This document shows positions 874 to 53,745 of a DNA stretch of 53,745 nucleotides, in pieces. The translations under genes and the position numbers were made by a program. The notes under the pieces were generated by a model. The model had not been told where the DNA came from. It saw only the letters and a list, made by a program, of their open reading frames with translations, and made no database searches. Numbering within the stretch: the first letter of the stretch is position 1; the number at the start of each line of letters is the position of its first letter. Origin of the DNA: Vitrella brassicaformis CCMP3155 (Eukaryota; Protista; Chromerida); contig CDMY01000548.1 of assembly GCA_001179505.1 (NCBI GenBank), positions 1 to 53,745 on the forward strand, read 5' to 3'.

Positions 874-1979
874 CACACATGTACATGTCTTCGCCTGTGT
901 ATGTGGTGTAGTGTGGTGGCAAATGCAACATGTGTGTGTGGCAAGCAGGTTGAACGGAAAGGATGTTTGTGCCGCACATTACACTCGCTACGGCTGGTTT
1001 GAGCGGGTGTTCACACGTCACCTTAATTTTCTTTGGCTGGCTACTTCTTACATGAGCTACATGAAAAGGTAGTCTGGGATATGTTCTTTGAATGGATAAG
1101 TTCATTAGAACTGGGTTGTGAAGTTTGTCTATGCATGGATATACATAGACATATATACATACATACGGTCTTTGCGATCCCACCCCTGATGTCCCTGACC
1201 ATAATCCCGTCCAGCTGCCCAACCAAGTGCCAAAAAGTGAAAAGGAAATGACGTCACGACGACCCCCATAGAACATATAGTAACACAGTCAGTCACTCAC
1301 TGTACTCGACGCACGCCAAGCCGACTAGCTAGCTGTGGCTGGACAACCTACTCTTACCATCCAATCATGCACTGCACACCACACCCTTACGTACACGATA
1401 TACGTACATCAGCACACACACACACACACACATCGACAGCCGTGGCACAACTCTGATGCTTTTCGTCCTTGCCTGCCCCTGCCTGGCAGCCCTTGCTCGT
1501 GTGTCGTGTCTGTCTAACACACCCAGGCATGAGGCCGATGAATAAACGAGACGAACAAGAAAAACGACAAATAGGTCAGTCAGTAAAGATGGCTGGCTGG
1601 CAGCTCATGCATCGATGGATGCCATGCCACGGCTGCATCCATGCATGAGCTGTCTGCCTTGCATCCGTACGATGAGTCTGAGGGGGCGGGTGTCACACCC
1701 ACCCACTCCCAAGAAAGGGGTCCCCGCTCCCACACTGTCTGGCTGGCTGTGTGACCTGGCAAAGTGACGTAAGTAAAGAAAAATGAGGTGACAGGAGAGG
1801 ACAAGACAGGACAGGACATAGGACATGACATGCCCAGGGAGCGGCTCGCAAGACACCATGTGGACTGGCTGGCTGGCTGACGGAACGACCTGTCTGGGCA
1901 TCAGCACGCAGGCACACGCAGGCAAACATCACACTCACACATACAAACCGGCACATGCAGGCAGGCAGGCAGACGGACA

Positions 1980-3564
1980 TCAGTCCCCCCTCAGCGCCCT
2001 GTATCCACCCTTCTTGCCGCCGTACGAGTAGCTCTTCTTAATGTGAGTCGGCGGGGCCTTCTTGGGCGGCGGGGTCTTCTTGGGTGGCGGCTTCTTCTTG
2101 GGCGCGGGCGTAGTGGTGTGTTCCTTCTTCGGTGGGGGTGGCGCCTTCTTGCCGTAATAAGAGGAAGAGTGGCCACCGGTGCCCAGCTCACGCACGTCGG
2201 CATCTGCACCACAGACAGAAAGACAGAGAGAGAGAGAGAGACACACAGACAGAGAGGAGGAGAGTGAACAATGAGTGTCACGCCGTCCATCCATCCATCC
2301 ATCCATGTATGTGTGTGCGGGCGGGCTGGCGGGCGGGCCGTCGATCGTGCAATGTGTGTGTGACATGCTTGATACACGTACGTACCGTCAGTCACATCCT
2401 CCTCCTGGAGCTCCCTGTATCCGCCCTTCTTGCCGCCGTACGAGTAGCTCTTCTTGGTGTGAGTCGGCGGGGCCTTCTTGGGCGGCGGGGTCTTCTTGGG
2501 TGGCGGCTCCTTCTTGGGCGCGGGCGTAGTGGTGTGTTCCTTCTTCGGTGGGGGTGGCGCCTTCTTGCCGTAATAAGAGGAAGAGTGGCCACCGGTGCCC
2601 AGCTCACGCACGTCGGCATCTGCACCACAGACAGACAGACAGAGAGAGAGAGAGACACAGACAGAGAGGAGGAGAGTGAACAATGAGTGTCACGCCGTCC
2701 ATCCATCCATCCGTCCATCCATCCGTCCATCCATCCGTCCATCCATCCGTCCATGTGTGTGTGTGTGCGGGCGGGCGTGTGTGTGTGTGCGGGCGGGCGG
2801 GCGGGCCGTCGACCGTGCAATGTGTGTGACATGCTTGATACACGTACGTACCGTCAGTCACATCCTCCTCCTGGAGCTCCCTGTATCCGCCCTTCTTGCC
2901 GCCGTACGAGTAGCTCTTCTTGGTGTGAGTCGGCGGGGCCTTCTTGGGCGGCGGGGTCTTCTTGGGTGGCGGCTCCTTCTTGGGCGCGGGCGTAGTGGTG
3001 TGTTCCTTCTTCGGTGGGGGTGGCGCCTTCTTGCCGTAATAAGAGGAAGAGTGGCCACCGGTGCCCAGCTCACGCACGTCGGCATCTGCACCACACACAA
3101 GACATACCAAGAACATACGGATGGGATGGGATGTATGTGGGCAGGGCGTGCCGTCGGTTGCTGACCATCTGCCGTCATGATCGTGTCATCAGCCGTCTGG
3201 ATATCCATTCGAAGAACCAACGCAACGAAGACGTGTGACGTGTGCACTGTGAGGTCTGTTTGTCTGACACAGAATGAAGTGTGCTTCTCTGACCACGTCA
3301 TTAATGTCCTCGGCGGCTGTTTCCGTGAGCTCCCTCGCCGGCTCTTCCTCCTGGGGCACACAAACAACACAGCACACACGTTCGGGAGATGCCACCCCAC
3401 CGACCCATGTACTAGATCAGCCAGCCTCTCTCTTCATTGCCCCACACCCATCCACGCAGGGCCGGGGTGCAGGCACTCGCTGTGTCGTCCATGCACTCAG
3501 ATCTTACCGGGACGGCACATGCGAAGGCCAGCAGGCCCAGGGCAACGCAGGCGAGGAGCTTCAT
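1980..3564 (-). CDS. Secreted extensin-like Lys/Pro/Tyr-rich polyprotein precursor with three tandem repeat exons (~278 aa)
   Basis: Phase-consistent exons 3564-3508 (signal [19 protein letters not shown]), 3350-3294, 3196-3166, 3085-2852, 2619-2386 and 2203-1980. The repeat is [56 protein letters not shown], flanked by REL motifs. Confidence 0.85.
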
Positions 3565-4104
3565 GACGGCCGGTGCACTCACAGACGACAGACCTGGGGA
3601 GGAGGGCGGATTCCCAGGAGATCCGATGAATGGCAGGATCCACGCTAGATCCGGATCGCCGTTAGGGTTCCGGATCTTCCGTGAAACGCTCCGGTGAAAC
3701 AGCCAGTTGGGGTGTGGCAGCCGGTGATGGCGAAGCTGCCTGTGAAGCTGAGCATCGGTGTCTTGGCTCGCGCTGCATGCGGATGGGGTGGTCAGTTCAA
3801 TCAACAGCAGTACCACAGTAGATGGAATGTACCTGTCTGTCTGTCTGTCTGTTTGTTTCCATGTGTGAGACGATGAATGACCTTGGCAGCTGTGATACAA
3901 TTGTCCACTCTACATTGTACTGATTCTTTGTCATTCATGGCTCGTGCATGTCACTTTGTTGATCGGTGCTTTGTCGCTCTGATTCGACACAAGTCGCTCA
4001 GTCAGTCAGTCAGTTGATGAGATGCATCCATGTCATGGCATCATTGGTTGGTTCGCTCTCACAGACGCAGAGGCACTCATGGCTCGTGCACTGCCTGCAC
4101 TCGC

Positions 4105-5069
4105 TCAATGGCTGTTGCGGGAAGTGTGTCTGCGTCTGCCGTGGCGGAGTCTGGCACCTGCACACAAACACAGACACACAGACAGACACACAGACGCACT
4201 GCGCGCCATCGATCATTCGTCCGTCTTTGCTCCATCCGCTTTCTGACTTACCGTTGTTTGAGTTGGATTGTTTGAATCTGACGGCCGACGTGGAGTATTT
4301 CCTCTCTGTGACAGTGGCCAGATTCGCACTCTCCTCTGCATTGATCCATCCATCCATCCATGTGGGTCTCTCCTTGAACACTCACCGAATCTTGGCGCAG
4401 ACGACAGCTCGGCCTCTGACACACACACAAGTCCATCCATCCATATTTGTGCTGCCTGTGTGGCGTGTCTGTCACCGAGGTGGGATGGCTTGCGCGAGAG
4501 GTCCGATAACATGTACAGCGGACCTGAAGTGATAACAGACAGACAGACACATGGATGGATGGATGGATGGCAAAGTGTACCCACCGAGATCATCCAGCGA
4601 ATCTAAGGAGACACAGAGACAACAGGAGACACAAGAAGCACAGACAGAGAGGGATGCACCGTTGTCTGTCTGTCTGAATTATTCCTTACCCTCATCCTCA
4701 TCTGCAGCCATCCGTCGCCGTGACACACACAGAGACATGCACGGAAAGATGATGATTGTGTGTGCATTACACGTGTCACGTACCATCGTCAGCCGGGAGT
4801 ATCTCGAGAGTGAGCTGATTGCCCTTCGTCACACCTGGCAAACTGATGACGGACAGCAGCAAACACACACCGAGAGAGAGAGAGAGAGAGAGAGGGAGGC
4901 AGAATGCATTCATCCAGTATATCATCATGTGAATGACTTACGCGTCGGTCTTGCTCATTCTGACAGGCTGTTGGTGCTGCTGTGCGGTGTCGGCCGTGCC
5001 GTCCACACCGATGCACAGCAGCAGCAGCAGCAGCAGTGTCACGACAAACGACGCTGACCACGACGCCAT
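4105..5069 (-). CDS. Small secreted acidic protein with about 8 short exons and a basic C-terminal tail (GARLRHGRRRHTSRNSH)
   Basis: Signal exon at 5069, then a chain of phase-1 micro-exons: DEDE, DSLDDL, GPLYMLSDLSRKPSHL, EAELSSAPRF, EESANLATVTERKYSTSAVRFKQSNSNN. All have GT/AG boundaries. Confidence 0.7.
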
Positions 5070-5906
5070 GATTGACAATCAGCCAATTGGAATCTCGTCA
5101 ATCACTGATCGACTCTCTCTGTATTCGAGTGTTGCGGAGGATACGTACGCGTACGCGTACTTATGTACATGGCAAAATTTAAATTCAACACCCACGGCAC
5201 GTAGTTCACCCATGTGTATGCAAGAATTGACGAGTTCCAACGCGCAAACGCATCCGACGATCGACTTGGGTCACAGCGACAGACCGACAGGTAGACGGAG
5301 AGCACCGACCATGGCATCAAGAAGCCCGACATGCGAAGATTCCTCCTTGGCACGGCGACAGAAAGGTCTCTCCAGCTCGTCCAGGCTGGCAGCCCAGTCG
5401 GCGACAGAAAGCTCAAAATCTATTATAAAGCCACCATGCAATAGATGAACGGCTCAACAAATGTCCTGTCGACCAAAGTCTCACTCTCTGCTCTGCTGCC
5501 TCACGGTGCGCTTCGCCTCGATTGTCCCCGCAGGCGCGTCTATTTCTTGTTCTTGGATGGGAACTTCAAGGTGTAGTTGGCGGGGAGGGGAAGAATCGGG
5601 TAGCGATGATGGACACGATTGGGGTCCTGTATGCACACACACAGCAGAGACAGCACAGATACCAGCCATTCAGCATGGCGGCAGGGGCCTTTTTAAGCAC
5701 GCACGTACCGGCAGGCAGCAACTACAATGGATAAAGAATAATACACAGGCCGCCACCCGTATAGAGAGAAAGAAAGATAGACACAGTCTCTCGCTGCGAT
5801 GATATCTAGGTGTGTATCGGCAAGGGTGTAGCAGCACGAAACCAAGAAAGAGGTGAATGTCACTGCACCCCTTGCCCCCTCCCTCTCCCATACTGACCCA
5901 CCCACA

Positions 5907-8407
5907 TTACTCGCTTTCTGTCTCACTCTCACTGCTGCTGCTATCTGTCCCCTCCTCTCCCTCCCTTGCAGCCAAGAACCTGCCCGCCACCCTCCGGGCC
6001 ACATTGATTCGACGGCGATAAAACCTGGCCTGTCGCCGTCCAAACTGAAACACTGTCGTGCCAACATCAAGCCCCGCCGAGCTAAAGGCTGGCCGGGACT
6101 CCTCTATTCTTGCCTTAGGAGGGGCGGGCCTAAAAACGCCCTCTGCTATCGCACTGCTGCCTGGGTTCACTGGTGGTGCGCTTGCTGTGCTTGTGCTTGT
6201 GCTTGTTTTGCCCGTGCCTGTCTGCTCGCTTCTAGGAGGATTGCTGGCTGGCGCCTCTGTCTCACTTGCAGAAGGAGTGGGCGAGGCGGTGGTGGCTGCC
6301 TCTGTCGGAAGCGGGCCAATCGGCACCACCTCCTCTTGCGCTATGACAAGAGTGATGTTGTCTCCTCCCTGCTCCTGCCTAGGGCCTGTCTCATCCCCGC
6401 CTGTCTCTGTCTCTGTCTCCCCTGCAGTACCAGACGAGACATCGGTACCACCACTGCCCGCTCTCTCTGCCCCCCGCTCCCTTCACATTCACGCACGCCA
6501 CCACCAGTGGTCCCCCCGCCCCCCGGATCGGGCATGTACGGCACGACAGGGAACCCGTGCACCTCTAGTGGCTGTACCTTCTCTTTCTTCTCCTTCTTCT
6601 TGCCGGGCGTCTTGTAGATGAGCGTGCCTGCGGGGACCGCCATGACGCACTTCTCCCTCTTCTCGTCCAGCACAAAGCCACCGTCCTTCACGTGCTCACA
6701 CTCCAATGCCGGCTTGTAAATCGTTAGCTTGGCGCACGCCTTGTTCTGTGCGTTGAAATAGCTGATGCACAAACGCACATACGCAGAGCTACAGAGGTAT
6801 CCGTATGTTCTGCGGCTTCTCTTATCCACTCACCCCTTTGGGCATTCGATCTTGAGTGCATCCTTTTCCTTGACCTGGTCGACACAATCGCCCGTGAGGG
6901 GGTCGAGCTTAAATTTGTAAGGGCACCGTATCTCTGCGTCGTCTATCTTGTGCTTCACACACGCGTCGAACTCCGCTCGAAAATACCAACCCTGAGAAAA
7001 GTTTCGCAGAGGCCACGAGAGACATGAATAGCGAATGAATCCCCGGGCATACCTCATGGCAATTGTCCTTGGCTTTCGGTGCTGTGCCCATGTACTGCTT
7101 GCAAGTGATTTTGAATTTGTCCATAGTGAATCCCTCCGGGCACACACTCATGATCTCGCAGTGCTTCTTGAAGCCCGGCTTTATGTGCTCCTTCTTGTCT
7201 CCCAGCAGGTCGCGGCCAGGTGCGGTCCCAAAGCCCTCCTCCCACATCTTGACCAGATCCATCTCGCGAGGGTCATCCACTGGATTGTCCTCTGTTCCTG
7301 GGTTGTCTTGCTGGGCCTCGAGGGCCCTCCTCTTTTTCGTGTCGTCTGGCTGTTTGGTGCTGATGTAGGAGCAGATCTCCTGGTGAATTGGCGGCACCTC
7401 GTTGATGATGATGCACACTTCCATCCCGCCCTTGGTCTCCTTCTGCACCAGGGCACACAAACGCACTGCGCATCTATTCGCGGCTTTGAGCACTGTCTGT
7501 GTCGACCTTTTTGAAGCCTTCGGGGCAGTGGGTCTTGGGAAAGTAGACTTCGTTCTTGATGCAGTAGGCGAAAGGCCCCTTCGGCTCCTCCGGCTCTTTC
7601 TTGTGGTGCTCTCCTTTCGGGCTGTGGTAGCTGGTCTTGTAGGCGTCCTCAACCGGATACTTGGACTCAATCCTCCACCATCTGCCACGCACACAGACCG
7701 AAACACGCAGGAAGAAAAGAGGTGGGGACAGATGTAGGCATGTGCGATGGTGCCTGCAGCAGACAAGGGCTCACGTACTTTGGCTGGCCTTCCTTGTGGC
7801 CGCATTGAGGGCTCGGGGGCTCCCGCTTCTCCCCCACACACTTGTTCAAGATCACATCGGGATGGAGACCCTTCGGACACTCCTGCACATGATTGATCAA
7901 TCAACACAAACGAGCGAGCCGAAAATGAGGGAAGGAGAAAAGAGGCAGCCAAGCTTGGACACTCACTATTTTGACAGGCTCTGCCTGGTCAAACATGTTG
8001 ACGTAGTGGCACTGCTTGGTAACAAAATCAAGCCGTTCAATCGCATCTTTGGTCTTCTTCCCTGAACACACATACGACATGAGCAAGCTCGTCACATCAA
8101 CACACATGGCCGTCCGTACATCCTCCCCCAACAACCTACCTGCGAGGAACTTCAGGCAGTGCCTGATGGGTTCGACTTCAACGATGGTGCCCTTGGGCAC
8201 CACAAAGGGCTTCTCCGGTAGCTTGTGCTTCTTCGCTTTGTCTTTGTCCTTGTCAGACGTCGCCATGATGAAGTTTTCCCCGTACCCGCCCATCGACAGA
8301 GTGAGGGGCGTGTCAAAGTCCATGGGGGTGAGCGTTTCGGCGTCGGTGGCAGCTTGTTGGGCGGCGAGTCTCTTGCAGAAAAGGAAGAGAAGGAAGAAAC
8401 GCAGCAT
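5907..8407 (-). CDS. Secreted oocyst-wall-protein-like (COWP/OWP-type) cysteine-repeat protein with a probable Ser/Thr/Gly/Glu-rich tail; 3' end uncertain
   Basis: Signal MLRFFLLFLFCKRLAA. Phase-consistent exons give repeats ECPKGL..NKC, HCPEGF..EVC, VCPEGF..ITC, RCPYKF..GDC and ECPKGY..KAC. The junction into the low-complexity tail near 6460-6500 needs a very short intron or a frameshift. Confidence 0.75.
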
Positions 8408-8490: not shown

Positions 8491-10255
8491 ATGATGAGCG
8501 TGACTCCACTGAGTGTTCCAGTAGCCATTCTGGTTGTCTTTCTCGGCACCCCGCAGAAGGAGGCTGCCTTCATCTCGCCAGCTGTCGGCGTGCGCAGATC
8601 GCTGCATCATGGCTGTCCGAGTGAATGCATTCTCCGCACGCCCAGGGACGGCCATTCTGCGTCTGTTGCGCTTCATCATGCACAGTCGCTGAGTGGCGGC
8701 ACCCCGCTGTGCCACAGAGGCGGGAGATGGGCCGCTATAGCCGTGTGGCCATCCATCAAGGCGCTGACACAGTGGCNNNNNNNNNNNNNNNNNNNNNNNN
8801 NNNNNNNNNNNNNNNNNNNNNNNNNNNNNNNNNNNNNNNNNNNNNNNNNNNNNNNNNNNNNNNNNNNNNNNNNNNNNNNNNNNNNNNNNNNNNNNNNNNN
8901 NNNNNNNNNNNNNNNNNNNNNNNNNNNNNNNNNNNNNNNNNNNNNNNNNNNNNNNNNNNNNNNNNNNNNNNNNNNNNNNNNNNNNNNNNNNNNNNNNNNN
9001 NNNNNNNNNNNNNNNNNNNNNNNNNNNNNNNNNNNNNNNNNNNNNNNNNNNNNNNNNNNNNNNNNNNNNNNNNNNNCCATCCATCAAGGCGCTGACACAG
9101 TGGCAGAAGGGTGTGATATTCGCTGGCTTCGCTGCCCTAGCGGCTGTGGCAGTCATTGCCAAGCTGCAGAAATCACAGGTGAGCACAAGAGAAACAGAGA
9201 TATTGATGAATTCATTGATCTATCTCCCCCCGTGTGCGTGTTGTTTTGCTGCATGCCCTCAGAAAGTCAAGCTGGGGGGACTCATACGCCGTCCTACGGT
9301 GGACAGCGACGCAATCGCACAAGAGTACTGCAAGCACAGTGGAGCAATGTGTTCTCATGCATTTCACTCTGGCGCTGTGCGTGCGTGGGTGTGTAAGGCA
9401 CGAGAAGGCTCTCGAGGCTGAGAGGAGCAAGGTGCGGTCACTCGAGAGCCAGATGCGCACATTGGCGGCCGAGCTGGAGGCGCAACGCGATCGTGTCAAG
9501 GACTTCGACGAGCTCAAAACCAAATACGACAAGGTACACAGATTTGCAGGCGATCAGACGGAGGACATGACCACCACCAGCCACACACGGATCGCTGCCG
9601 CTGTGTTGTGTGTGTCAGGTGGTCGCCGATATGGCTCGTGTGTCTGAGAGAAAGCGCTCGCGGACAAGCAGATCCAAGAGGTATGTACGAGGAAGACACG
9701 CATGACGATGGCTGCAACAACATGGATGGTATGCTGATGCTGACTGATATGGATGGTGGTCAGCTACTGGATCGTATCAAGGTAGCAGAGGAGCATGCTG
9801 CTCAGGCCGCTGCAGAAAGCAAGCAGATGAGGGACAAGGTGGCAGGCGTCAAAGTGACGGGCGTGCAAGAGCACGTCAACAACGATGTGCCGGTAAGTAC
9901 TTAAGGGAGAGACCTCCCGAGGTGGCCAAGAGAGACGTATGTCATGACTGTGTGCGTGTCTGTCATGGTGTAGGCTGTGCCCGCCAGTCGCACCGACATA
10001 TACGATTGGGTGAACCTGTACAAGAAGGACCAGCTCATCCACTTCGCTAAGGTATGTAACCAACCAGCCACCACCCCCACACACATTCACACCCACACAC
10101 CACACCACACCACACACACCAACCTGCCGCAAACATGTGTATGTGTCTGGTGCTGAAAGGTGTACGGTGTGGACACCCGCAAGGGGCAGACAAAGATGGC
10201 GATTGTTGATGAGATCGCCAAGGCCATCTACTCACCCACGACTGGCGACGAGTGA
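8491..10255 (+). CDS. Membrane-anchored coiled-coil protein with a C-terminal Rho_N/SAP-like helical motif and a possible bipartite plastid leader (copy 1; apparent 1-nt frameshift near 9648)
   Basis: Leader MMSVTPLSVPVAILVVFLGTPQKEAAFISP, TM segment GVIFAGFAALAAVAVIA, coiled-coil exons, and last exons WVNLYKKDQLIHFAK / VYGVDTRKGQTKMAIVDEIAKAIYS. An alternative ATG lies at 8425. Confidence 0.65.
8777..9076. other. 300-N assembly gap; probably spurious
   Basis: The same ~29 nt (ccatccatcaaggcgctgacacagtggc) occur on both sides, and copy 2 is contiguous here. Confidence 0.9.
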
Positions 10256-11690
10256 ATGCATCCACTGCCAGCCAACCGAGTGCCGTCGGTCAGTGTACAG
10301 TCAGGTCAAGTCCGCCCAGTGCATCGCATCCATCACGATTCGGTGGACGTGATTAGCCCCCGTGGCTCCATGTATGGGTGTTGTGTGATGTATGCAACAG
10401 GCAGGTAGGCAGGTAGATAGACAGGTAGATAGACAGGTAGGTAGCTGGGGATGATCAAGAAGAGAAGGTGCCTTACTGCCTGTGGGGTAGGTGCGGTTCG
10501 CGGGCTTTTTGTGTGTAGTGAGGGAGGGATGGATGGATGGAGGGAATTGCTTTCGGTTTTCGTGCGTCGGTCACATGATGAGCGTGCTGTATATAAGTCA
10601 GTCACTGGAGCATGTGTGCCCCCGGTCGGTTGGTTGTGTTAGATGCCTCTGGGCACAGACAACGGTTTTGACTTTGCCTTCTTTCGCCCCCTCGGCTCCT
10701 CTTCCCACCCCCTCTCTCTTTTCCTCTGTTTATGTGTGTGCCGTGCTGAGACCACATGTATATGTATACGTATGTGCGGTGGATTGCGTTTGGTATGTGT
10801 CTGTGTATGTGTGTGTGTGTGTATGTGTGCGAATGGGACACATACACATGATTTGAGATATTTGAACCCTCTTGGATTCACTCACAATCGTGTCCAGCTT
10901 GCTGACTCACCCATGCGAAGGCGAGGCCCGAAGGGCCGAGCCGAGCCTGAGTGCGTCTGTGTCTGTGTGTGTGCATCACACACACACGACCCCCCCACAC
11001 ACCGATCCAGCCACCCCCTGCACACACACAAACACTCTCTATCTCTCTCTGTGTGTGTGTGTGTGCCGTGCGAAGGCGAGGTCCGAAGGGCCGAGCCGAG
11101 CGTGTCTGTCTGTCTGATGCTGTGTGTGTTGTCTGTGTGTGTGTGCATCGTATGGACACCCCCTTGCACCCCTACACACAGCCACTCACCCCTGCACGCA
11201 CTCCCTCTCTCTCTGTGTCCATGGGTTTTTGGCCAACTTGGCGATGACCTGGAAGGACGAGTATTGACTGTAGAGCTTATCTACAAGATGTTCTGATTGT
11301 CAACGCCCATCGGTTTGCCATTCGTCGTTTCCACCAAACTGCACCTCTCACCACTTCACCGCACTCACCCCATCGATACCCCCCCTGCCGCATACCCACT
11401 TCTCACACACGCAAGGCCAGCCGCCCAACCGCCGCACACAGACAGCCCACCACACCAACAGTCATTCCCCGACTTCCCAGCCTCCTGCGCTGGACACTCG
11501 TCGAGTTGTGTGTGTCTGAGTGTCTCGGTGCGTCTGCCGCCCACTGCTGCACACCTGCATTCACCCATTTCGCAAACCCCAGGCGTCAGTACTGTTCAGA
11601 TGAGCACGGCAGCGGCCACCATGGCCACTTGCAATGGAAAAAAACCTCCCAACTCGGCCGATCGCCGCGCACTGCGAGCTTAGATGTGCA

Positions 11691-12973
11691 GGGACGGCCA
11701 TTCTGCGTCTGTTGCGCTTCATCATGCACAGTCGCTGAGTGGCGGCACCCCGCTGTGCCACAGAGGCGGGAGATGGGCCGCTATAGCCGTGTGGCCATCC
11801 ATCAAGGCGCTGACACAGTGGCAGAAGGGTGTGATATTCGCTGGCTTCGCTGCCCTAGCGGCTGTGGCAGTCATTGCCAAGCTGCAGAAATCACAGGTGA
11901 GCACAAGAGAAACAAAGATATTGATGCATTCATTGATCTATCTCCCCCCGTGTGCGTGTTGTTTTGCTGCATGCCCTCAGAAAGTCAAGCTGGGGGGACT
12001 CATACGCCGTCCTACGGTGGACAGCGACGCAATCGCACAAGAGTACTGCAAGCACAGTGGAGCAATGTGTTCTCATGCATTTCACTCTGGCGCTGTGCGT
12101 GCGTGCGTGGGTGTGTCAAGCACGAGAAGGCTCTCGAGGCTGAGAGGAGCAAGGTGCGGTTACTCGAGAGCCAGATGCACACATTGGCGGCCGAGCTGGA
12201 GGCGCAGCGCGATCGCGTCAAGGACTTCGATCAGCTCAAGAGCAAATACGACAAGGTACACAGATCTGCAGGCGATCAGACGGAGGACATGACCACCACC
12301 GGCCACACACGGATCGCTGCCGCTGTGTTGTGTGTGTCAGGTGGTCGCCGATATGGCTCGTGTGTCTGAGGAGAAAGCACTCGCGGACAAGCAGATCCAG
12401 GAGGTGCGGCTGGAGTGGCTGGAACAAAATGGATACATACATGCTGCCTTGCCTGCGTATCGATGGTGGTCAGTTGGTGGATCGTATCAAGGTAGCAGAG
12501 GAGCATGCTGCTCAGGCCGCTGCAGAGAGCAAGCAGATGAGGGACAAGGTGGCAGGCGTCAAAGTGACGGGCGTGCAAGAGCACGTCAACAACGATGTGC
12601 CGGTAAGTAAGGGAGAGACCTCCCGAGGTGGCCCAGAGAGGACGTACGTCATGACTGTGTGCGTGTCTGTCATGGTGTAGGCTGTGCCCGCCAGTCGCAC
12701 CGACATATACGATTGGGTGAACCTGTACAAGAAGGACCAGCTCATCCACTTCGCTAAGGTAACCAACCAGCCACCACCCCCACACACATTCACACCCACA
12801 CACCCACACCGCCAACCTGCCGTGAACATGGGTATGTCTTTGCTGCTGTGTGTGGTGCTCTGTGTTTGTGTGTGTAGGTGTACGGTGTTGACACCCGCAA
12901 GGGGCAGACAAAGATGGCGATTGTTGATGAGATCGCCAAGGCCATCTACTCACCCACGACTGGCGACGAGTGA
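11691..12973 (+). pseudogene. Copy 2 of the TM/coiled-coil/Rho_N-like gene, lacking the leader-encoding 5' end
   Basis: Homology to copy 1 begins at gtgcag/GGACGG. No equivalent upstream exon is visible, and the acceptor near 12120 is altered. Confidence 0.55.
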
Positions 12974-13109
12974 ATGCATCCACTGCCAGCCAACCGAGTG
13001 CCGTCGATCAGTGTACAGTCAGGTCAAGTCCGCCCAGTCAGTGCATCGCATCCATCACGATTCGGTGGACGTGATTAGCCCCCGTGGCTCCATGTATGGG
13101 TGGGTGTTG

Positions 13110-13409
13110 NNNNNNNNNNNNNNNNNNNNNNNNNNNNNNNNNNNNNNNNNNNNNNNNNNNNNNNNNNNNNNNNNNNNNNNNNNNNNNNNNNNNNNNNNNN
13201 NNNNNNNNNNNNNNNNNNNNNNNNNNNNNNNNNNNNNNNNNNNNNNNNNNNNNNNNNNNNNNNNNNNNNNNNNNNNNNNNNNNNNNNNNNNNNNNNNNNN
13301 NNNNNNNNNNNNNNNNNNNNNNNNNNNNNNNNNNNNNNNNNNNNNNNNNNNNNNNNNNNNNNNNNNNNNNNNNNNNNNNNNNNNNNNNNNNNNNNNNNNN
13401 NNNNNNNNN
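13110..13409. other. 300-N assembly gap
   Basis: Run of N. The equivalent stretch in copy 1 is only about 80 nt. Confidence 0.95.
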
Positions 13410-13864
13410 TTACTGCCTGTGGGGTAGGTGCGGTTCGCGGGGTTTTTGTGTGTAGTGAGGGATACATGGATGGAGGGAGGGAATTGCTTTCGGTTTTCGT
13501 GCGTGCGTCACATGATGAGCGTGCTGTATATAAGTCAGTCACTGGAGCGTGTGTGCCCCCGGTCGGTTGGTTGTGTTAGATGCCTCTGGGCACAGACAAC
13601 GGTTTTGACTTTGCCTTCTTTCGCCCCCTCGGCCTCTGCTTCCCACCCCCTCTCTCTGTTTCTCTGTTTATGTGTGTGCCGTGCTGAGACCACATGTATA
13701 TGTATACGTATGTGCGGTGGATTGCGTTTGGTATGCGTATGTGTATGTGTGTGTGTGTGTATGTGTGCGAATGGGACACATACACATGATTTGAGATATT
13801 TGAACCCCTCTTGGATTCACTCACAATCGTGTCCAGCTTGCTGACTCACCCACTTCTGCTCACT

Positions 13865-20231: not shown

Positions 20232-21460
20232 ATGATGGTCTGGCGCCTCCTTCTGGCCTTCGGCGGACTGCTGTGTGGGGCACAGGTTGCTCCGGCCGAC
20301 AGGCAGCAGCTCCGTTTGCGAGAAGACTCCGTGGGGCATGGTGTGCGTGAGGCATCTGCCAAGCTTAAGGTCAGCACCAAATCAATGATCCTTCGGGCAA
20401 TCCAGACGGCTCGGGAGAGCGGCAGGAGGGAGTTAGATAGCGCGTTTGTCGAGGCGGGCCTGACCAAGGTGGAGTTCGACGTCAGCGACACCCTCAGTAC
20501 GCTGACACAGACTCTCTGGGCGGCAGAGGTGACCCCTCAGCATTACACACGCCGCACTGATCATGAATAATGCTCTCTGAAAATGCTTGTTCGTGCCAGG
20601 GAGCGCCAGACCTACCCAGGCTGCTCTTTCCACCAGGTATAATATGACTCTGCGACACCAAGTGGCATGTCTGTGGTGGATGTGACTGCAGCTGGCGAGC
20701 AGGAGGGGGACGAATGTGAAGTGATTGATGTGGAACCCCCCGAAGTGATTCCTGCCGACGGCGTGCGGACAATCACCATCGAAAACCTGGTGAGCAACGT
20801 ACAGGGCGAATTCGGGTCACTCCTAGTTGGGCGTCTGCGTGCCTTTTGTCTGGTTTGTGCAGTCGCAGCTACAGGACGCTGGGGCCATTGTGGTCGCCAC
20901 AAACAGTCTAACAGGCGACGCTGATATCTCTGTCGCCATCGACGGGTAAGAAGGAAGAGCCGAAGACATGACGGGGCTGGCGGAAAGCGCGAGACTCATT
21001 TCATTGTGCGTCCGGTCATGCGCACACGAATGCAGCTTCTTTGTGGGCGGCAGCAGTGTTCCGAGCGATTACGACCCAGACGTGTATGAGGATGTAGCCG
21101 TCGTGCCGCTAATCGGCGAGGAGCTGTTCATCGTCATCTTCCCATTCACTGATGAAGACGCAGACGTGGTCAGCTAGTAACTAGCTACCTAGCCAACCCT
21201 CATGCCTCTTTCCATCTTTCTCTGTGTGTGTGTGTGGCCGTGTTCAGGAGGTGTCCGTGTGGCTGGTCGACGCGGGGTATCCCCTGGGTGAGGTGTGCGT
21301 CAGTCCCGTAGCCACATCGTCCGATCTCTTCCCCGGTCCCGACGGCACCTTCCCACCGCCCGTCACCGCTCCAGGCCCTGGACCTCCACCACCTGCAGAT
21401 GACTACGAAGAGCCCGACCGTGTAGATGATGACGATGATTTTGATGACCGTTTCGGATGA
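20232..21460 (+). CDS. Secreted PPC-like beta-domain protein, paralog 2 of 4 (Pro/Asp-rich tail)
   Basis: Signal MMVWRLLLAFGGLLCGA; exons GAIVVATNSLTGDADISVAIDG and VYEDVAVVPLIGEELFIVIFPFTDEDADV; intron positions match paralog 1. Confidence 0.8.
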
Positions 21461-25965: not shown

Positions 25966-26103
25966 CCCCTGTGTGTCTCTCAGGCTTGATTCTTTCCTTC
26001 CCGCCTCGGCGTCCGCTTCTTAGGAAGCCGAAGGGCATCACGGGGTCCAGAGGGCCGGGCTTCACGAAGGGTGTCGCGACCATCCCCACCTTGTCGGCCC
26101 CGG

Positions 26104-27145
26104 TCATCTCACGGTGAGTCGCCACCTCTTCGGCGCAGTGTCACGGTGCACCGTCGACTTATCGGAGCCGGAGGCAATCGTGATCTGCTTCTTAGTGCGC
26201 GACACGGGCGGCTGGTGCTTGCAGCAGTGGCAGTTTCTGAGGAGCTTTTCCTTGATCTTCTCCCCCATCTTCTTCTGCTTCTCCTCGTCCTTGATGTTCT
26301 CCTTGATCGTCTTCTCCTTGTCCTTGTCCTTGTCCGGCTTCTCTAAGACTTCGAGTGCGGCTTGCAGGCCCACATCGTCGCACCTGAGCTTGGTGAATGT
26401 GAGGGCGTTTGGGAAGTTGTGGAAGACGTCCTGGATGGATTTGAAGCTGTAGCACTTCATGCCTTCGGGGCACTCCCCCTTTCCCGGCTTTCCGTACTCC
26501 TCTCCGTCCTTATTGGTGTGCCCGCACTTGACTGCATTCATAACCGGAGACACCACACACACACACACACACACACACAGGGATGGACGTGGGCCGCGAC
26601 TGTCTTGCGTCCTGTCGTTTGCATGAGTGTTTCTGTGCCGATTCAAGCGTCACTCACTGCCAGTGCCGGCGCAGCCATGAAATATCGCTGGCCATTCCTC
26701 GAGGTCGGACAGGCCGGTGGCCTCTTCTGACGCACATGTCATCCACACACGCACAGACAGAGAGCGAGACACGCTAAGGCACGCGTGACACACACCGGCC
26801 GATGCATGTACCTGCAACATCGGCGGGGTGCTGGTAGCCTTCCTCAGAGTCGCATTCCGCATCGGACAGCATGCCAGGGCACTGCAGAGGTGGGTGCCTC
26901 GGTGGTGCAGGCAGTGCCGAGAGCCGTGCCAGCAGCTCTGCCTCGTTCACACCGGCAGGTGGTGTACGCAGTGCCCGGAGCCGTGCCAGCAGCTCAGAGT
27001 CTGTCTCGTTCACGCCGGCACTTGGCCGGGTCTGATTGGTCTGGTTGGCGTCCACAGGCGTCTCTGTTGGCCTCGCCAGGAAGGCATCGGAGAGACACAG
27101 AGTCGCCAAGAAGACAACAAGCACCAGACTGTGAAGAGGCGGCAT
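26104..27145 (-). CDS. Secreted Cys-containing protein with a duplicated GVNE..ELLARLxAL motif and a Lys/Glu-rich helix; 3' end uncertain
   Basis: Signal MPPLHSLVLVVFLATLCLSDA. Phase-1 exons end at 26812 and continue through EEATGLSDLEEWPAIFHGCAGTG and IKCGHTNKDGEEYGKPGKGECPEGMKC. Confidence 0.65.
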
Positions 27146-27907
27146 TAGAAAACTTTGACGGATAGGCGGATGGTTGGATGGGTGGATGGATCCTCGAGGG
27201 GAACGCCGTCGAAAAGAACGACCAGGCGCGTCTCTGAGTCGGCCCCCACGGGATGGAGGCACGGCATCTCGCACGGATCATGCATGCGCTTCCTAGCCAG
27301 GCTTGGAGCTCGCTCGTCAGCCTGGCTCCTGTCTGTCGGTCATCGCATCAGTGTGAAGCATTTCATCCATCAGTCATGAGTGATCGTGCATAATGCCATG
27401 GTGTCTGTCAAAACCCATGAAGGACATGTCACCTGACTCCTGCATGTGTGAATGAATGAACAGACAATCCGCGAGATTCAATCGATGCAGCTGCGAATAT
27501 CCGTGCGGGTGAGGTGACCTGTGCGTGCGTGCGAATGCTCGTATGTACATACAGCAGCAAACCCATCCATCCAGCCATGCCGAAAATAGCGCTAGCAGCA
27601 GCAATACGTGTAATTGCGGAAAAGAGCAAGTGCAAGGAGAGAGAGGGAGGACCAGCTAACAGCTGGCGTAGCGCAGCGTAGCGTTAGGCAACACACACGA
27701 GCAAAGAGGCAGGCAGAAAGGCAGAAAGGCTGGCCTGCTGATCGGTCGATCGATGGAAAACACAGCCAGCCAGCCAGCCAGCTGTACACGCGTCCGCGCC
27801 GAGGCAATGGAATGCAATGCCTGGGTGCCACACAGGGCCGAGGGTGCCCAGGTGACGCGCTTGGAATGAGAGCAAAGAAGTAGGGGAAGCAAGCAGGGTC
27901 GGGCGGA

Positions 27908-29361
27908 TCACACCCATTTGTAGAAGAGGACATTTGCGATGGCCAAGACGACACCCAAATCCAAACCCGAGTGGGCAGCAGTCGCCGTCAATATGCCGAG
28001 ACTGAGCCAATACACACACATACACACACACCATTGCCAGTCGCTTGATGAGGGCGTGTGGTTGGGTGGGCAAGTGGCGTACCTTTTGGTGTTTCTGCAT
28101 ATGATGAGCAGCCGGCCGAACATGGTGAGGAAGACGAAGGCCAAGGCGGCGTACAGCGTGTTGACGAGATGGTAGACGACAACCACGTGATACGTACCAT
28201 AAAACATCGACACAACCATCTTCCCAACCTCACTCAGACGCACATCTGACAGACAGTCAGACAGACAGACAGACCCGTAAGCTTTATCCGCCCTCCCCGC
28301 CTCTCTGTTGTGCATGACTGCGTACCATGAAATGTCCCGGCCGAGTCGTGGCATGTAGCGCCCCCTTCTACGTCCCGGTGTGAAGTGGGCGACACATCGA
28401 TGGCCACACCGTCGGCCGCTGCGTTGCCCACGGGCTGCCGGGGGGAGGGGGACTCGGCCGTCGCCACTCTGTCCCTCAGAGGGAGAAACTCACCCTCATC
28501 GAGCGCAAAGAGACGACCGCCCAGCTCCTGCATGAATGGAGGTGTGTGTGTATGTGGGTGGGCTTGGGAGGGATGGGAAAAATTGCATGTGTGCTGTGCT
28601 GACCCTGTATAGCACCAGTCGCCAGAAGAATTCCTCAAATACTGGGTTGACGATGGTGAAGTACATGCCGACGAGCCATGCATTGGTCTCGCTGTAGTTG
28701 AAGCCCTCCTGGATGATGTTCTTAGGGCGCAAGGGCATACACAACCACGGAAAGATCCCGCCGCACTTGAGCACCGCATAACCTGACACACACACCCGCA
28801 CCAGCACGTATGCAGCGATTCGTGAGAGCGCTGAATGTGTGTCTGCTGACCGATGAAGCACGCCCCGACCATGACGCAAAAGGCGACAATGGACCAGCCG
28901 AGCTGCTCCGGCCACCTGACCGACACGCAACACCAACACCACATCATTTGCAACTGAGTGAGACCCTCTTGTGGAGTGTGTGCACGTCTGTGCGTGTGTG
29001 TGTGTGTGTGTGTCCCTCACCCACCTCTCGAGCTGTGACTTCATGAGTCCATTATAGTATGGCCACGCAGAGGTGAACGTGATGAACAGCGCCGTGAGCA
29101 GACCCATGCACACCCAATGCATCATGACCAATGCTGCAATAATAAGGACACACACACAAACACACGCACAGACGCATTGCAATGGGTGTGAGATGGCAAT
29201 CAGTGGACGGGCGGATGGTCTCATCGCTCACCGAGCACGACCTGGTGGAGGCCGGTGATGCAGATGACCATCGTGAGTGTGGGCGCGGCGCCCAGCAGCA
29301 CGACGATGAATATGGTGCCCCATCCTTGCCACCCGTCCTGGTCAGCCGCCAACGAAGTCAT
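27908..29361 (-). CDS. CPBP/Abi family intramembrane metalloprotease (type II CAAX protease-like)
   Basis: Multiple TM exons with the motifs PVFEEFFWR, FYGTYH and AAHSGLD. Confidence 0.85.
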
Positions 29362-29571
29362 CCAGAAACCCCCGTCACCGCTGCCGTCTACTCTTGCTCA
29401 TTGGAATCGCTCAAATCGGGCAGGCATGCGTGTGTACGTGATTACACCACGTCAATGGCCGCTGCGGAGGCGTGTTTCCCTTCCTTCTCTGGCGAGCTTT
29501 GAGGCGAGCTTGACGTCGTCGTCGCCAAAAAACAGCGGGAAGAAGGAGTCTGCAGCATCAGACCGCATCAG

Positions 29572-31817
29572 ATGTCCTCAGCCACGGCAGCGGCCGTGAC
29601 TTCATCTTCTGGCGCAGCTGCATTCGATGACTGGATAGCGTCGTCGACATCCACCACGACGCAGCCATGCACAGAGGCAGCAACAACAAGCCGCAGCAAG
29701 ACCAACGAGCACCATCCACACGGCCATGCCCACTCCCGTGCGCGTCCCGCCCTCCCCCATCCGCCCCCTGACGATGCCGATGACCATCACCACTACGTCG
29801 CTCACAAGGTGACCGAGTTCCCCGAGTTCGATGAGCAGGAAGAGGTCAAGGTGTTCGACGGGCAGATCAAGTCCCAGCAGCACGACATCACCCTCACCAA
29901 GGACGGCTACTACACCATCTCGGTGACCAACAGGAACGAGGCCGTCTGGGACAGCCTGTGGCTCGGCATTCAGCACATCGCCGTCAGGAATGAGTACGAG
30001 CTCGTCAGGAAGACCACCGAGGCAGCAAGCCCCATGCTGCCCAAGAGCCGGCTGGGCGGGGAGGGGCCCGGGGCGCTCGCCTCCCCCCTCGCCACGCAGA
30101 GCACCCCTTCCGCCCCCGCCCCTTCCCCACCCAAGAAGGACCGCCGCGGCCGGCAGGACAAGAAGGCCGAAGGCAAGGCCGACACGCCCACGCCAAACCA
30201 CACGTCCGTCCTCAAGGGGGCAGTGGAGGTGCGGGCCAACCAGACCCGGACGACGTCCTTCTACGCGACCGAGGGCACGGTGCTCAAGATGAATGTCTTC
30301 GCCAAGGCGGCGGCAGGCTTCGGCGTCAAGGGCGACTACTCACTCATATATGGGGGCGCGCCGCGGCTGCTGCCCAACAACCCCGTGGCGCCGTTTCTGC
30401 GGAAGGCTGGGATTCTGGTGCTTGATGGGGGCGGCGTGCTGGGTATCTCGTCGCTGAAGATCCTGGAGAGGCTGGAGAAGGAGCTGCAGAAGGAGATGGG
30501 GAGCGACACGGTGCAGCTCGTCGACTGCTTCGACATGATCGTCGGCACCAGCACCGGAGGCATCATCACTCTGGGACTGCTTGCCGGTACGTGGAGTAAG
30601 AGAGAAAGAGAGAGCAGAGGACACACGAAGTATGTGTGTGTGTGTGTTGGTTGTGATTGGTGTGTGTCAATAGGCCGCTCCATCCAGGACATGACGGACA
30701 TGTGGGGCACGGTGAGCAGCAAGATCTTCGACGGCTCCCGCACCCTCTTCTCCGGGCTCTTCTTCGAGGGGTACGACATCAGCCGCATGAAGAACGTCCT
30801 CATGGACAACCTGGGCAACAGGTTCCTCGACACATACGGGCCGCCCCTCTGCTTCGTCACCTCCACGGACGTCAAGCACCAGCCCTACCAGCTGTTTCTG
30901 CTGCGCAACTACCAGCACAAGCACTACTCGCGCCACGAGTACCGCGGCAGCAGCCACTTCCCCCTCTGGGCCGCTGCGTGGGCAACCAGCTCGGCACCCA
31001 CATACCTCAAGGGCCCGACAGCAGAGGAACTGGAGGCCATGGGCATACACATCGAGCCGCAGGTGAGCCAGGGAGGGAGGGAGGGAGGGAGGGAGATGAC
31101 CTTTTCTCTCTGTTTGTGGGTGGATCGGTGCGTATCGGCGGTGTTTGTGTGTGTGGTTGGTCATGAATGGCATGGTCAGGTTCATTTGGTGGACGGTGCG
31201 ATGAAGGCCAACAACCCTGCGTTTGTGGCGCTGGAGGAGTGCGCGAGGCTGTGCGGCAAGCAGCTGAGCCACTTCATAGAGGAGGACCTCGACATACTCG
31301 TCTCCATCGGCACCGGACAGCCAGGCATGAAACTCACACAGGGGGAAAGCGCCAAAAACACTCAGGTAAAGCGGGGGTGGGCGGGCGACACAGAGAGAGA
31401 GAGAAAGAAGTCACGGAGGTTTGCGTGTTGTGTTGTGTTTGTTCAGGCGAGCACGTTTCAGATAGTGATGAACAGCAGCCACCTGCTGACGTCGAGCACC
31501 AATGTGCACCGAGAGGTGCTGCACTGGCTGGCCGACCAGGACGACATGTACTTCAGGTTCAACGTCCCCGGCATCGGTGACATCCCGCTCGACTCATCAG
31601 ACAAAAGGTATCAAGAATCCTTGATACATACCACATCAACACACGAATGACGACTCTCTCTCTCTCTCTCTGTGTGTGTGGACATATCAGGCACATCGAC
31701 TTGATTCGGAAGGCCACGGTGGAGTACATATTGGACGAGAAGTTCTACGACGTCAAGCGACTGGCCCGAAGGCTCGCGAACCGACTACTCGCCAGGGCTT
31801 CCGCATCCATTCTCTAG
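29572..31817 (+). CDS. Patatin-like phospholipase with an N-terminal GOLD-like beta region
   Basis: DGGGVLG oxyanion motif, GTSTG nucleophile, WATSSAPTY, VDGA; spliced to a final exon ending at 31817. Confidence 0.92.
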
Positions 31818-34706: not shown

Positions 34707-36240
34707 ATGCCATTGCTCTCTTTGCTGTTCGTGTTCTCAGCTCTATCGATGCTGCACTGCGCATCGGAAGGCCTCCACGGTGAGTTCTTCCCATACGCTT
34801 TGCAAAAAGGTGAGAGACAAACATGAGACACTGGACGGGGGCTGGACTGCCAGCTGCGGCAATGCAGGTGGGCCCCTTCCATTGAATTCATCGACTCTGT
34901 CTCCGCGCCCCTCCCTTCACGACTCACATGGTGATAATCACATCCTCCACACCGACGAGTTGAAGAAGACGGTCCAGCAACCTGGCTATTTCGATGAGAT
35001 CCGGCCGCTGCTATGGGTGACTCCCATCGCCCCGCAACTTGTCAAGTGGCTGGAGCACTTTGCATCGATGGCATTCGACTGCCTCATTCGCAGGGACCAC
35101 GGCCCCAGCACCGAAGAGAGCTCCGATTCGGGCCTGGTGGCCGCCTTCCACGGCTGCATCGACTGGCATTCAGCCGTGCATGCACACTGGGCTGTCCTGC
35201 GAGTCGCCAGGGCCCTTCGGCAGTCTGACGCTCTCTCTGATGACATACGCAGGATGGCGACAACGCTCGAGCGCACACTGACATCGGAGAGGGTGGACAA
35301 GGACACGCTCGAGGGCCTCAGGCGGTATCGGAGCTTCGAGCTGCCTTATGGGCGAGCGTGGCTGCTGCTGCTGGTGCGAGAGACCGCTGTTTGGCATCAC
35401 GAGGAGCATGGTGGGCCTGATGAGTCGCTTGTGTGGCTGTTTAAGCTGGGTGACGAGGTCTTTGACGAGCTGCGGCAACATTACAGCAGCCCGGCACATA
35501 GCGAGGCATCCGAGCTGTCGTTCTTGCAAGTGGGAGCAGCGGCAAGGCGGCTGCACGCCAAGGAAAACGACGCCAATCCATCGACGCCGAGGAGACACCA
35601 TCCTGTTGAAGCGTCAGACATCGATGCTGGGCGTGTGCTCGACGTCATTCGAAGGTATCGTGTGTCTCACTCGCCGACGCAAGACTCTCCCGCATATCAC
35701 AACGATGCCTGGGCACTCCTCCAGCTGCTCGAGTATGCCCGCTTTCGACAGCAGCCGCCGCATGACATCCTCGCTCTTATCGAAAAGCGCTTCCCCTCCC
35801 CGCCCACCTACGTCCCCTCCGCCGAGCACGAGGCATCCGGCTTCTTCTCGCCCTTCTGGTCGCAGTGCTACCTGTGGGCCCATGCGCTCGACATATCTGC
35901 ACCGGTGTTTCTCCAGGCCCTCGATCAGATAAGCGATGCGACACTGGAGGTGCCACGCGTCAACCAGACGGGGGCCAACGGACACAACCTTGGCAGGGTG
36001 TGGAGCCGCGCATGGGCCATGGTCAAGACAGCTGCCGCGGCGGCGCACATCGGCGAGACAGCACGTAAAGTGGGCGCAAGGACGCGTGAAGCGGCCGCGT
36101 CTCACGTGATTGTTGGGCTGAAGCAGCGGTTCATGGTGGCCGGGGGTGGTGGGGACGAAGCGTACATGCAGTACGGCCACTGGGTGCCCCAATTCAGTGT
36201 GCTTGCTCTGACGGAGGGCTTGGGAGACACCTCGTCCTGA
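34707..36240 (+). CDS. Secreted DUF2891-like protein (copy 1)
   Basis: Signal exon 34707-34809, a 58-nt intron, then one long exon with AFHGCIDWHSAVHAHW, FELPYGRAWLL, GHNLGRVWSRAW and YGHWVPQF. These match my recollection of bacterial DUF2891 motifs. Confidence 0.8.
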
Positions 36241-36760
36241 CTGTGTGTGGCAGTTCCGTGATACGAAGATGGGAAATGCTGGGAATGCCTTTGAGCGATG
36301 TGTGCTATTTGTGGGGCGGGAAGCGATTTCAGATGAGTTGCTGACTGGGCATCTACCAGTCAGCACCTATCAGATGAACACCGGTGAGTCAGTCAATCGG
36401 TTTGCATTCAGGTAAGTCAGTCATTCGATGAGGCACGGGGTCGGTCGGTGAGACGAACACCGTAATCCACCACCCCCCGACTAGTAGCTACGACACCGCC
36501 GTCCCTTTGCTGCTACTGGTGACTCGCTCGCGCACTACAGCCACGTACTTCACTCACTAACCATGCACACTCCATGGACACACACACACCATGGGCACCG
36601 TACACACATCAGACAACACAGATGCATACACAATAATATAAAGAAAGTCGAGTGAGTTAGTGACGTGGTCATGGTGGTCAGCTAATTGTATGCACGTATC
36701 TATAATCACTGCACCAGGACCCATCTCCACCAGCCCCTCCCGCCGACTAGTCCTCTTTCG

Positions 36761-53541: not shown

Positions 53542-53745
53542 CTCTGTGTGTGGCAGTTCCGTGATACGAAGATGGGAAATGCTGGGAATGCCTTTGAGCG
53601 ATGTGTGCTGTTCGTGGGGCGGGAAGCGATTTCAGATAAGGGCTGTCTGGCATCCATCAGATGAACACCGGTGAGTCAGTCAATCGGTTTGCATTCAGGT
53701 AAGTCAGTCATTCGATGAGGCACGGGGTCGGTCGGTGAGACGAAC

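Follow-up and report, generated by a model that had tools for sequence, protein, structure and literature searches.

The window analysed here is the whole of scaffold CDMY01000548.1 (53,745 bp, assembly GCA_001179505.1) from Vitrella brassicaformis CCMP3155, a coral-associated alga and indeed, as the sequence-only reading of this DNA had supposed, a non-parasitic relative of apicomplexans. Near one end of the scaffold we predicted a gene of six exons on the minus strand, with position 3564 as its start and position 1980 as the end of its stop codon. The exons were joined by script, which gave 837 nt and a protein of 278 amino acids. All five introns begin with GT and end with AG, and the phase is consistent throughout. 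The coordinates 1980-3564, the residue numbers and the motifs that had been reported earlier are all present in the sequence, as seen in the reverse complement of 3700..1900 after the exons were assembled. The features of the gene are listed below in the direction of reading.

3508..3564, minus strand: exon 1, with the start codon and a hydrophobic signal peptide of 19 aa; donor GTAAGA
3294..3350, minus strand: exon 2, 57 nt, phase 0-0; start of the acidic pro-region, with RELTE (REL codons 3335-3327)
3166..3196, minus strand: exon 3, 31 nt, acidic, gives the repeat exons phase 1; based on frame and GT..AG only
2852..3085, minus strand: exon 4, repeat unit 1, 78 codons; DADV-REL (3074-3066), then the basic peptide, then QEEDVTD
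3065-2874, minus strand: basic peptide of unit 1, with its terminal REL at 2882-2874
2620..2851, minus strand: intron 4, phase 1, microsatellite-rich, duplicated along with the exon
2386..2619, minus strand: exon 5, repeat unit 2, with REL at 2608-2600 and 2416-2408
2204..2385, minus strand: intron 5, homologous to intron 4 except for microsatellite indels and a few substitutions
1980..2203, minus strand: exon 6, third repeat unit, changed by E>K, T>I and REL>RAL (2000-1992); C-terminal RGD; stop TGA at 1982-1980

Each repeat is carried by one phase-1 exon, the repeat exons share identical donors (GTACGT) and acceptors (GTGCAG), and the frame stays open through all units. The choice of exons 2 and 3 is not unique, because brute-force enumeration returned thousands of possible in-frame GT..AG paths for the N-terminal part, among them one that joins exon 1 to exon 3. 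Exon 2 has a pyrimidine-rich acceptor of good quality; it was placed by splice-site quality and frame only, and since RELTE resides on it, skipping of this exon would drop the motif. ORFs on the plus strand across the repeats were also considered and rejected, as they are Arg/Leu/Gly-rich mirror images of the Lys/Pro frame, without start or splice logic.

The first 19 residues of the predicted protein are hydrophobic, with a mean Kyte-Doolittle value of 2.6 over residues 3-17 and, as judged by inspection, small residues at -3 and -1. According to the -3/-1 rule, the signal peptide is more likely to be cut after Ala17 (A-C-A|VP) than after Pro19. RELTE occupies residues 25-29, and an acidic stretch runs from there to residue 55, with a net charge of -9 for residues 28-55. 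Thus the 19-aa signal peptide and the RELTE behind it, both claimed before, are found in the 278-aa protein. Plastid targeting was rejected, since a transit peptide would not have the strongly acidic segment that follows the leader here. What follows are three basic peptides of 64 aa rich in Lys, Pro, Tyr and Gly (net +12, +12 and +15, pI about 10), between which lie two acidic linkers of 14 aa, QEEDVTDDADV-REL, with a net charge of -6 each. The sites of the form VREL|G have their REL at residues 53-55, 131-133 and 209-211, those of the form YREL|QE at residues 117-119 and 195-197, and the last site, YRAL|RGD, lies at 273-275, so that the boundaries V-REL-G, Y-REL-QE and Y-RAL-RGD and the linker QEEDVTDDADV all stand where they had been placed.

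The charges of the segments therefore alternate (-9, +12, -6, +12, -6, +15), and RxL is located exactly at every boundary between an acidic and a basic segment. Outside the signal peptide, all seven Leu and seven of the eight Arg fall in RxL. In the non-redundant part of the protein (residues 20-126, 107 aa), this holds for three of three Arg and three of three Leu, with REL each time, and at least three RxL occurred in just 1 of 200,000 composition-preserving shuffles of these 107 residues. The earlier statement that RxL flanks every repeat is right as to the presence of the sites, but, the units being recent copies, no more than three of them are independent, with one variant besides. Similarly, acidic linkers that mask the charge of the peptides were an overstatement: a linker of -6 offsets about half of +12 to +15, and the protein without its signal peptide still has a net charge of +15.

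A basic peptide of 64 aa contains 14 Lys, 14 Pro, 8 Gly, 7 Thr, 5 Tyr and 5 Ser. The lysines form seven KK pairs per peptide, with KK-x-PPP cores and PPP or PPPP stretches, and the ends of the peptide are rich in Tyr, Gly and Lys, with YY and a single YSY in each unit. AlphaFold gave no secondary structure for one unit (pTM 0.14), and by this model the secreted protein would be intrinsically disordered.

The repeats are young. Exons 4 and 5 match at 234 of 234 nt, and intron 4 recurs as intron 5 save for microsatellite indels; therefore the duplication is very recent or the copies have been homogenised, and the three units are not independent of one another. Exon 6 has five substitutions relative to the other repeat exons ahead of its tail. 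Where the tail of the last unit has diverged, its site retains R and L (the Leu with a silent CTC>CTG change) and the middle residue has changed from E to A, a small point in favour of RxL as a site, in repeats that are otherwise too young to carry a selection signal. The C-terminal RGD was dismissed as a designed motif, as it arises where the final linker is shortened and frame-shifted.

We further examined the number of copies. Words from the internal repeat exon (2386-3085) are 6.0-8.6 times as deep as those from the unique flanks (1900-2026 and 3225-3700) in each of the four DNA runs, with two identical copies in the assembly, while the terminal unit and the junction of intron 3 and exon 4 are at single-copy depth. 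Contigs of the DNA runs that end at 3099 carry on with GACAGACAGA, which is characteristic of the inter-repeat introns. Probably, a tandem array of roughly 6-9 units has been collapsed in the assembly, an estimate that rests on contig depth and is accordingly rough. Alternatively, the excess depth may come from identical paralogues elsewhere.

Expression was sought in public sequencing runs. Runs X1-X4, the four in which the locus occurs, consist of genomic DNA, for their contigs pass straight through the introns and show no joints. As for RNA support, the one RNA-labelled run contains 1 of the 21 exon words (0.02-0.05 of the words). Another run, X6, contains 0.76 of the exon-4 words, yet it did not come up among the runs that match the 1801-nt stretch around exon 4. 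In the protein sets, a word-index search of 5.8 billion sequences (candidates of 127-402 aa) returned no protein bearing the unit, and exact matching of 15 translated ORFs in and around the locus gave no recorded protein. The searched sets do contain other annotated proteins of scaffold CDMY01000548.1 (P0002) and MMETSP transcript ORFs of Vitrella (P0009). Moreover, a Logan contig from a Vitrella run (L002, run ERR558152), compared with 26100-31800, is an intron-free sequence of 5 kb that holds three neighbour genes (276 aa, 313 aa and a 625-aa patatin) and is evidently transcript-derived; RNA-derived Vitrella assemblies therefore exist, with adjacent transcripts merged in this one. The gene is thus apparently unannotated and was missed by the transcript assemblies, which could reflect masking of perfect repeats or trouble in assembling them, stage-specific expression, or silence.

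As for relatives, phmmer with one unit against 1.84 billion representatives gave a single match, P0001, which is a translated junk repeat; accordingly, no relationship to GAM56/GAM82 or TyRP was found in that search. No Pfam family, extensin models included, was matched by residues 1-126, which contain one whole unit. The Atlas search returned compositional look-alikes only, with scores of at most 0.67, namely a viral mucin-like G protein, extensin-like clusters and apidaecin clusters, the apidaecin cluster at 0.54 being a lead only. The layout of the protein was compared with known systems.

Among diatom proteins, Sil1p of Cylindrotheca fusiformis has a 19-aa signal peptide, an RXL behind it and an acidic N-terminal domain, followed by tandem basic repeats with Lys clusters, whose C-terminal RXL tetrapeptides are absent from the mature peptides (PMC4557024). 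RXL recurs in cingulins, silacidins and frustulins, where it is presumed to be the recognition site of a specific endopeptidase (PMC4557024), and the RXL domains of diatoms are removed by a yet unknown protease (PMC5525289). Besides Sil1p, the known biosilica proteins with RXL include cingulins, silacidins, Sin1 and SAPs (PMC4557024; PMC5525289), and these diatom proteins have in common with the Vitrella protein that they possess no fold and no detectable homology between species. The Vitrella protein resembles Sil1p in the order of its parts, in the REL at 25-27 after the leader, in the REL or RAL that ends each basic peptide and in the basic repeats with Lys clusters (14 Lys per 64 aa, in seven KK pairs). 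It differs from silaffins in that its peptides are Pro-rich and Ser-poor (5 Ser vs 14 Pro per 64 aa) rather than Ser-rich, its units are 64 aa long vs 15-33, and its acidic linkers have RxL on both sides. Furthermore, silaffins are stramenopile proteins, whereas Vitrella is an alveolate, for which we infer processing from sequence. Among the systems compared, the silaffin-type RXL precursor appears closest in layout, and this parallel, which the sequence-only reading had mentioned in passing, proved the best architectural match, with the same order of parts as Sil1p.

The second system is that of the apicomplexan PEXEL/TEXEL substrates. The clade D aspartyl proteases of apicomplexans cut RxL motifs in the ER or Golgi (PMC8540915), and the Vitrella protein is similar to their substrates in that it has RxL in a secretory protein of a sister lineage, with the first site just after the signal peptide. 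Three of the seven sites match the plasmepsin V pentamer RxLxE/Q/D (RELTE once and RELQE twice), and the other four have no E, Q or D at position 5 (RELGT three times, as the N-terminal fence of each basic peptide, and RALRG). RRL, the motif of Toxoplasma ASP5, is found at none of the seven sites and nowhere else in the protein, which excludes the TEXEL class. Hence, of the PEXEL/TEXEL-like sites proposed before, RELTE is an exact RxLxE and three of seven fit, but four of seven are off the pentamer and the RRL form is absent. The Vitrella protein also differs from PEXEL/TEXEL substrates in having seven sites across its repeats, not one N-terminal site, and the free-living Vitrella has no host for export. 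With its basic stretches fenced by RxL sites and acidic spacers, the protein is a candidate target of the malaria-parasite export protease in a pre-parasitic form.

The description of the peptides as extensin-like was apt as to composition: the protein is predicted to be secreted and extended, is rich in Pro, Lys and Tyr, and has one YSY (YxY) per unit and a PPPP run. However, SPPPP is absent from it (APPPP occurs once per unit), no Pfam extensin model was matched and no homologue was found, so membership of the extensins was rejected. Unlike the extensins of plants and green algae, it belongs to an unrelated lineage and has a polyprotein layout with acidic spacers. A nearer lineage is offered by the coccidian Tyr-rich wall precursors, which are likewise secreted and disordered. 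GAM56 and GAM82 of Eimeria are disordered Tyr-rich precursors that give rise to small peptides, which become part of the resistant oocyst wall by cross-linking through Tyr (PMC4776368). The Vitrella peptide has no sequence similarity to them and contains about 8% Tyr (5/64), and the available text of PMC4776368 describes no RxL fences for GAM56/82. Vitrella itself has oocyst-wall-protein domains (PMC4501334), and the chromerid wall is described as mainly cellulosic, with uncharacterised proteins (PMC9293442).

We propose that the gene encodes a secreted, disordered polyprotein that would be cut at RxL into basic peptides acting outside the cell. This reading is preferred because the layout of Sil1p matches and because the clade D proteases of apicomplexans cut RxL; we hold the whole chain tentatively, at somewhat less than an even chance. 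After removal of the signal peptide, an endoprotease of the secretory pathway that recognises RxL would cut after each Leu. It could be a putative aspartyl protease of the plasmepsin V/ASP5 type in the alga, or one of the kind that trims the RXL domains of diatoms. With these cuts the acidic pro-piece and the 14-aa linkers, which may partly neutralise the cationic peptides in transit, would be lost, and several copies of one polycationic peptide (about 61-64 aa, about 7 kDa, pI about 10) would be freed. The multi-copy secreted precursor of the earlier account is thus borne out in its layout (signal peptide, acidic pro-region, basic units and RxL at the boundaries), with cleavage deduced from that layout. 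The most likely role of the freed peptides would be extracellular, in a matrix, wall or adhesive, and they could bind polyanionic or cellulosic wall polymers. Their Tyr/Gly/Lys ends, the KK-x-PPP cores and the extended disordered chain point to such a structural or adhesive role. Tyr cross-linking, as in the Tyr-rich peptides of the coccidian oocyst wall, is conceivable. Counting against the proposal as a whole are the single exon word of 21 in the RNA-labelled run, the protein searches that returned neither the unit nor a homologue, the young age of the repeats, the four sites off the pentamer, the absence of RRL, the low share of Tyr (5 of 64 residues) and a chromerid wall described as mostly cellulosic.

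Several other explanations have to be weighed against this proposal. The protein could be secreted and remain uncut, as a block-polyampholyte of wall or mucilage in which REL is simply part of the repeat, for example a boundary that aids self-association of the charged blocks. The alternating charge blocks and the predicted disorder would suit such a protein, its extensin-like and mucin-like look-alikes (scores of at most 0.67) act uncut, and there are just three independent RxL sites, the units being recent copies; yet it leaves unexplained the restriction of Arg and Leu to RxL, seen at each of the three independent boundaries, one of them just behind the signal peptide, and we regard it as unlikely. 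A different secreted product is suggested by the apidaecin-type precursors of insects, in which many copies of a cationic Pro-rich peptide are carried with acidic spacers on one secreted precursor. A multi-copy precursor of cationic Pro-rich antimicrobial peptides, whose acidic spacers keep them harmless in transit, would account for the arrangement of basic units and acidic spacers in Vitrella, an alga that lives among coral-associated microbes, and the apidaecin cluster with its Atlas score of 0.54 is a lead in this direction. Apidaecin precursors, however, are animal proteins with peptides of 18-20 aa and dibasic/dipeptidyl processing, unlike the RxL sites and longer peptides of the Vitrella protein, which has no homology to them; peptides of 61-64 aa are long for the class, and their Tyr/Gly/Lys ends look adhesive or structural. 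We give this reading a slim chance.

The likeness to Sil1p could also be taken more literally, in that the Lys-Lys clusters, perhaps modified, would condense silica, polyphosphate or acidic polysaccharide during wall formation. The order of parts of Sil1p is present and the KK spacing resembles clusters of the KXXK type, but Ser is scarce (5/64) and Pro abundant (14/64), and Vitrella is not known to silicify. In addition, the wall of Chromera is mostly glucan (PMC9293442), and a silaffin-like templating peptide seems to us very improbable. Finally, the locus could be a silent, very young tandem duplication or be mis-modelled on a draft scaffold. It appears neither in public annotation nor among transcript-derived proteins, and it lies on a scaffold that contains N gaps and duplications; an inverted repeat surrounds the locus, and the N-terminal exons are not unique. 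On the other side stand a clean signal peptide after the start codon, five canonical introns, a phase kept across identical exons and a frame that is open in three units and, by depth, in further copies, and annotation pipelines often mask repeat-rich genes. We assign silence or mis-modelling a rather small probability, and judge that the locus is quite probably a real expressed gene.

If the cut polyprotein is the right reading, the gene bears on what the PEXEL/TEXEL protease did before apicomplexan parasitism, for which it is, alone, modest evidence. A free-living chromerid here supplies clean candidate RxL substrates, in which Arg and Leu are nearly confined to the boundaries of charge blocks, and a candidate for the protein part of the chromerid wall or adhesive. 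In a wider and more doubtful extension, a general RxL endoprotease related to plasmepsin V/ASP5 would mature many unrelated extracellular polyproteins of Vitrella, the original task of the PEXEL/TEXEL protease would have been matrix building in a free-living alga, and diatom RXL, oomycete RxLR and apicomplexan PEXEL would be branches of one ancient SAR pathway. Here the multi-copy, RXL-fenced layout of a silaffin precursor turns up in an alveolate, combined with a Pro/Lys/Tyr composition and doubly fenced acidic linkers; a search of the available literature returned nothing that ties chromerids to RxL-processed polyproteins.

The surroundings of the gene are rich in repeats. An inverted repeat of about 545 bp brackets it (1-544 vs 3977-4521, 93.7%), and a direct repeat adjoins (568-872 vs 4823-5148, 91%); these bracketing repeats could stem from an inverted duplication at this site, from a foldback-type element or from misassembly. 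Segmental duplications with 92-96% identity are found at 9077-10913 vs 11795-13852 and at 34820-36458 vs 52114-53745, the latter bearing two DUF2891 paralogues. Four gaps of 300 N (8777, 13110, 37138 and 46196) mark the scaffold as a draft. Between 41500 and 44150 there are dense minisatellite-like arrays, whose ORFs are periodic His/Ala/Gly-rich or CVRRL-type repeats with no signs of a gene.

Two other genes on the scaffold deserve mention. The multi-exon gene at 6341-8407 (minus strand) matches the MMETSP transcript ORF P0009 (486 aa) with 98% identity over the shared part; its first exon opens with a signal-peptide-like leader, and among the search returns it had no NCBI-annotated counterpart. 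The annotated gene of 235 aa (L001 814-1889) that starts at 20385-20570 (plus strand) lies in an ORF that has an upstream in-frame part resembling a signal peptide, MMMVWRLLLAFGGLLCG, and contains GRREL-D. Judging from this upstream part, the annotated start of the 235-aa gene may lie too far downstream, and the gene may hold another RxL behind a leader.
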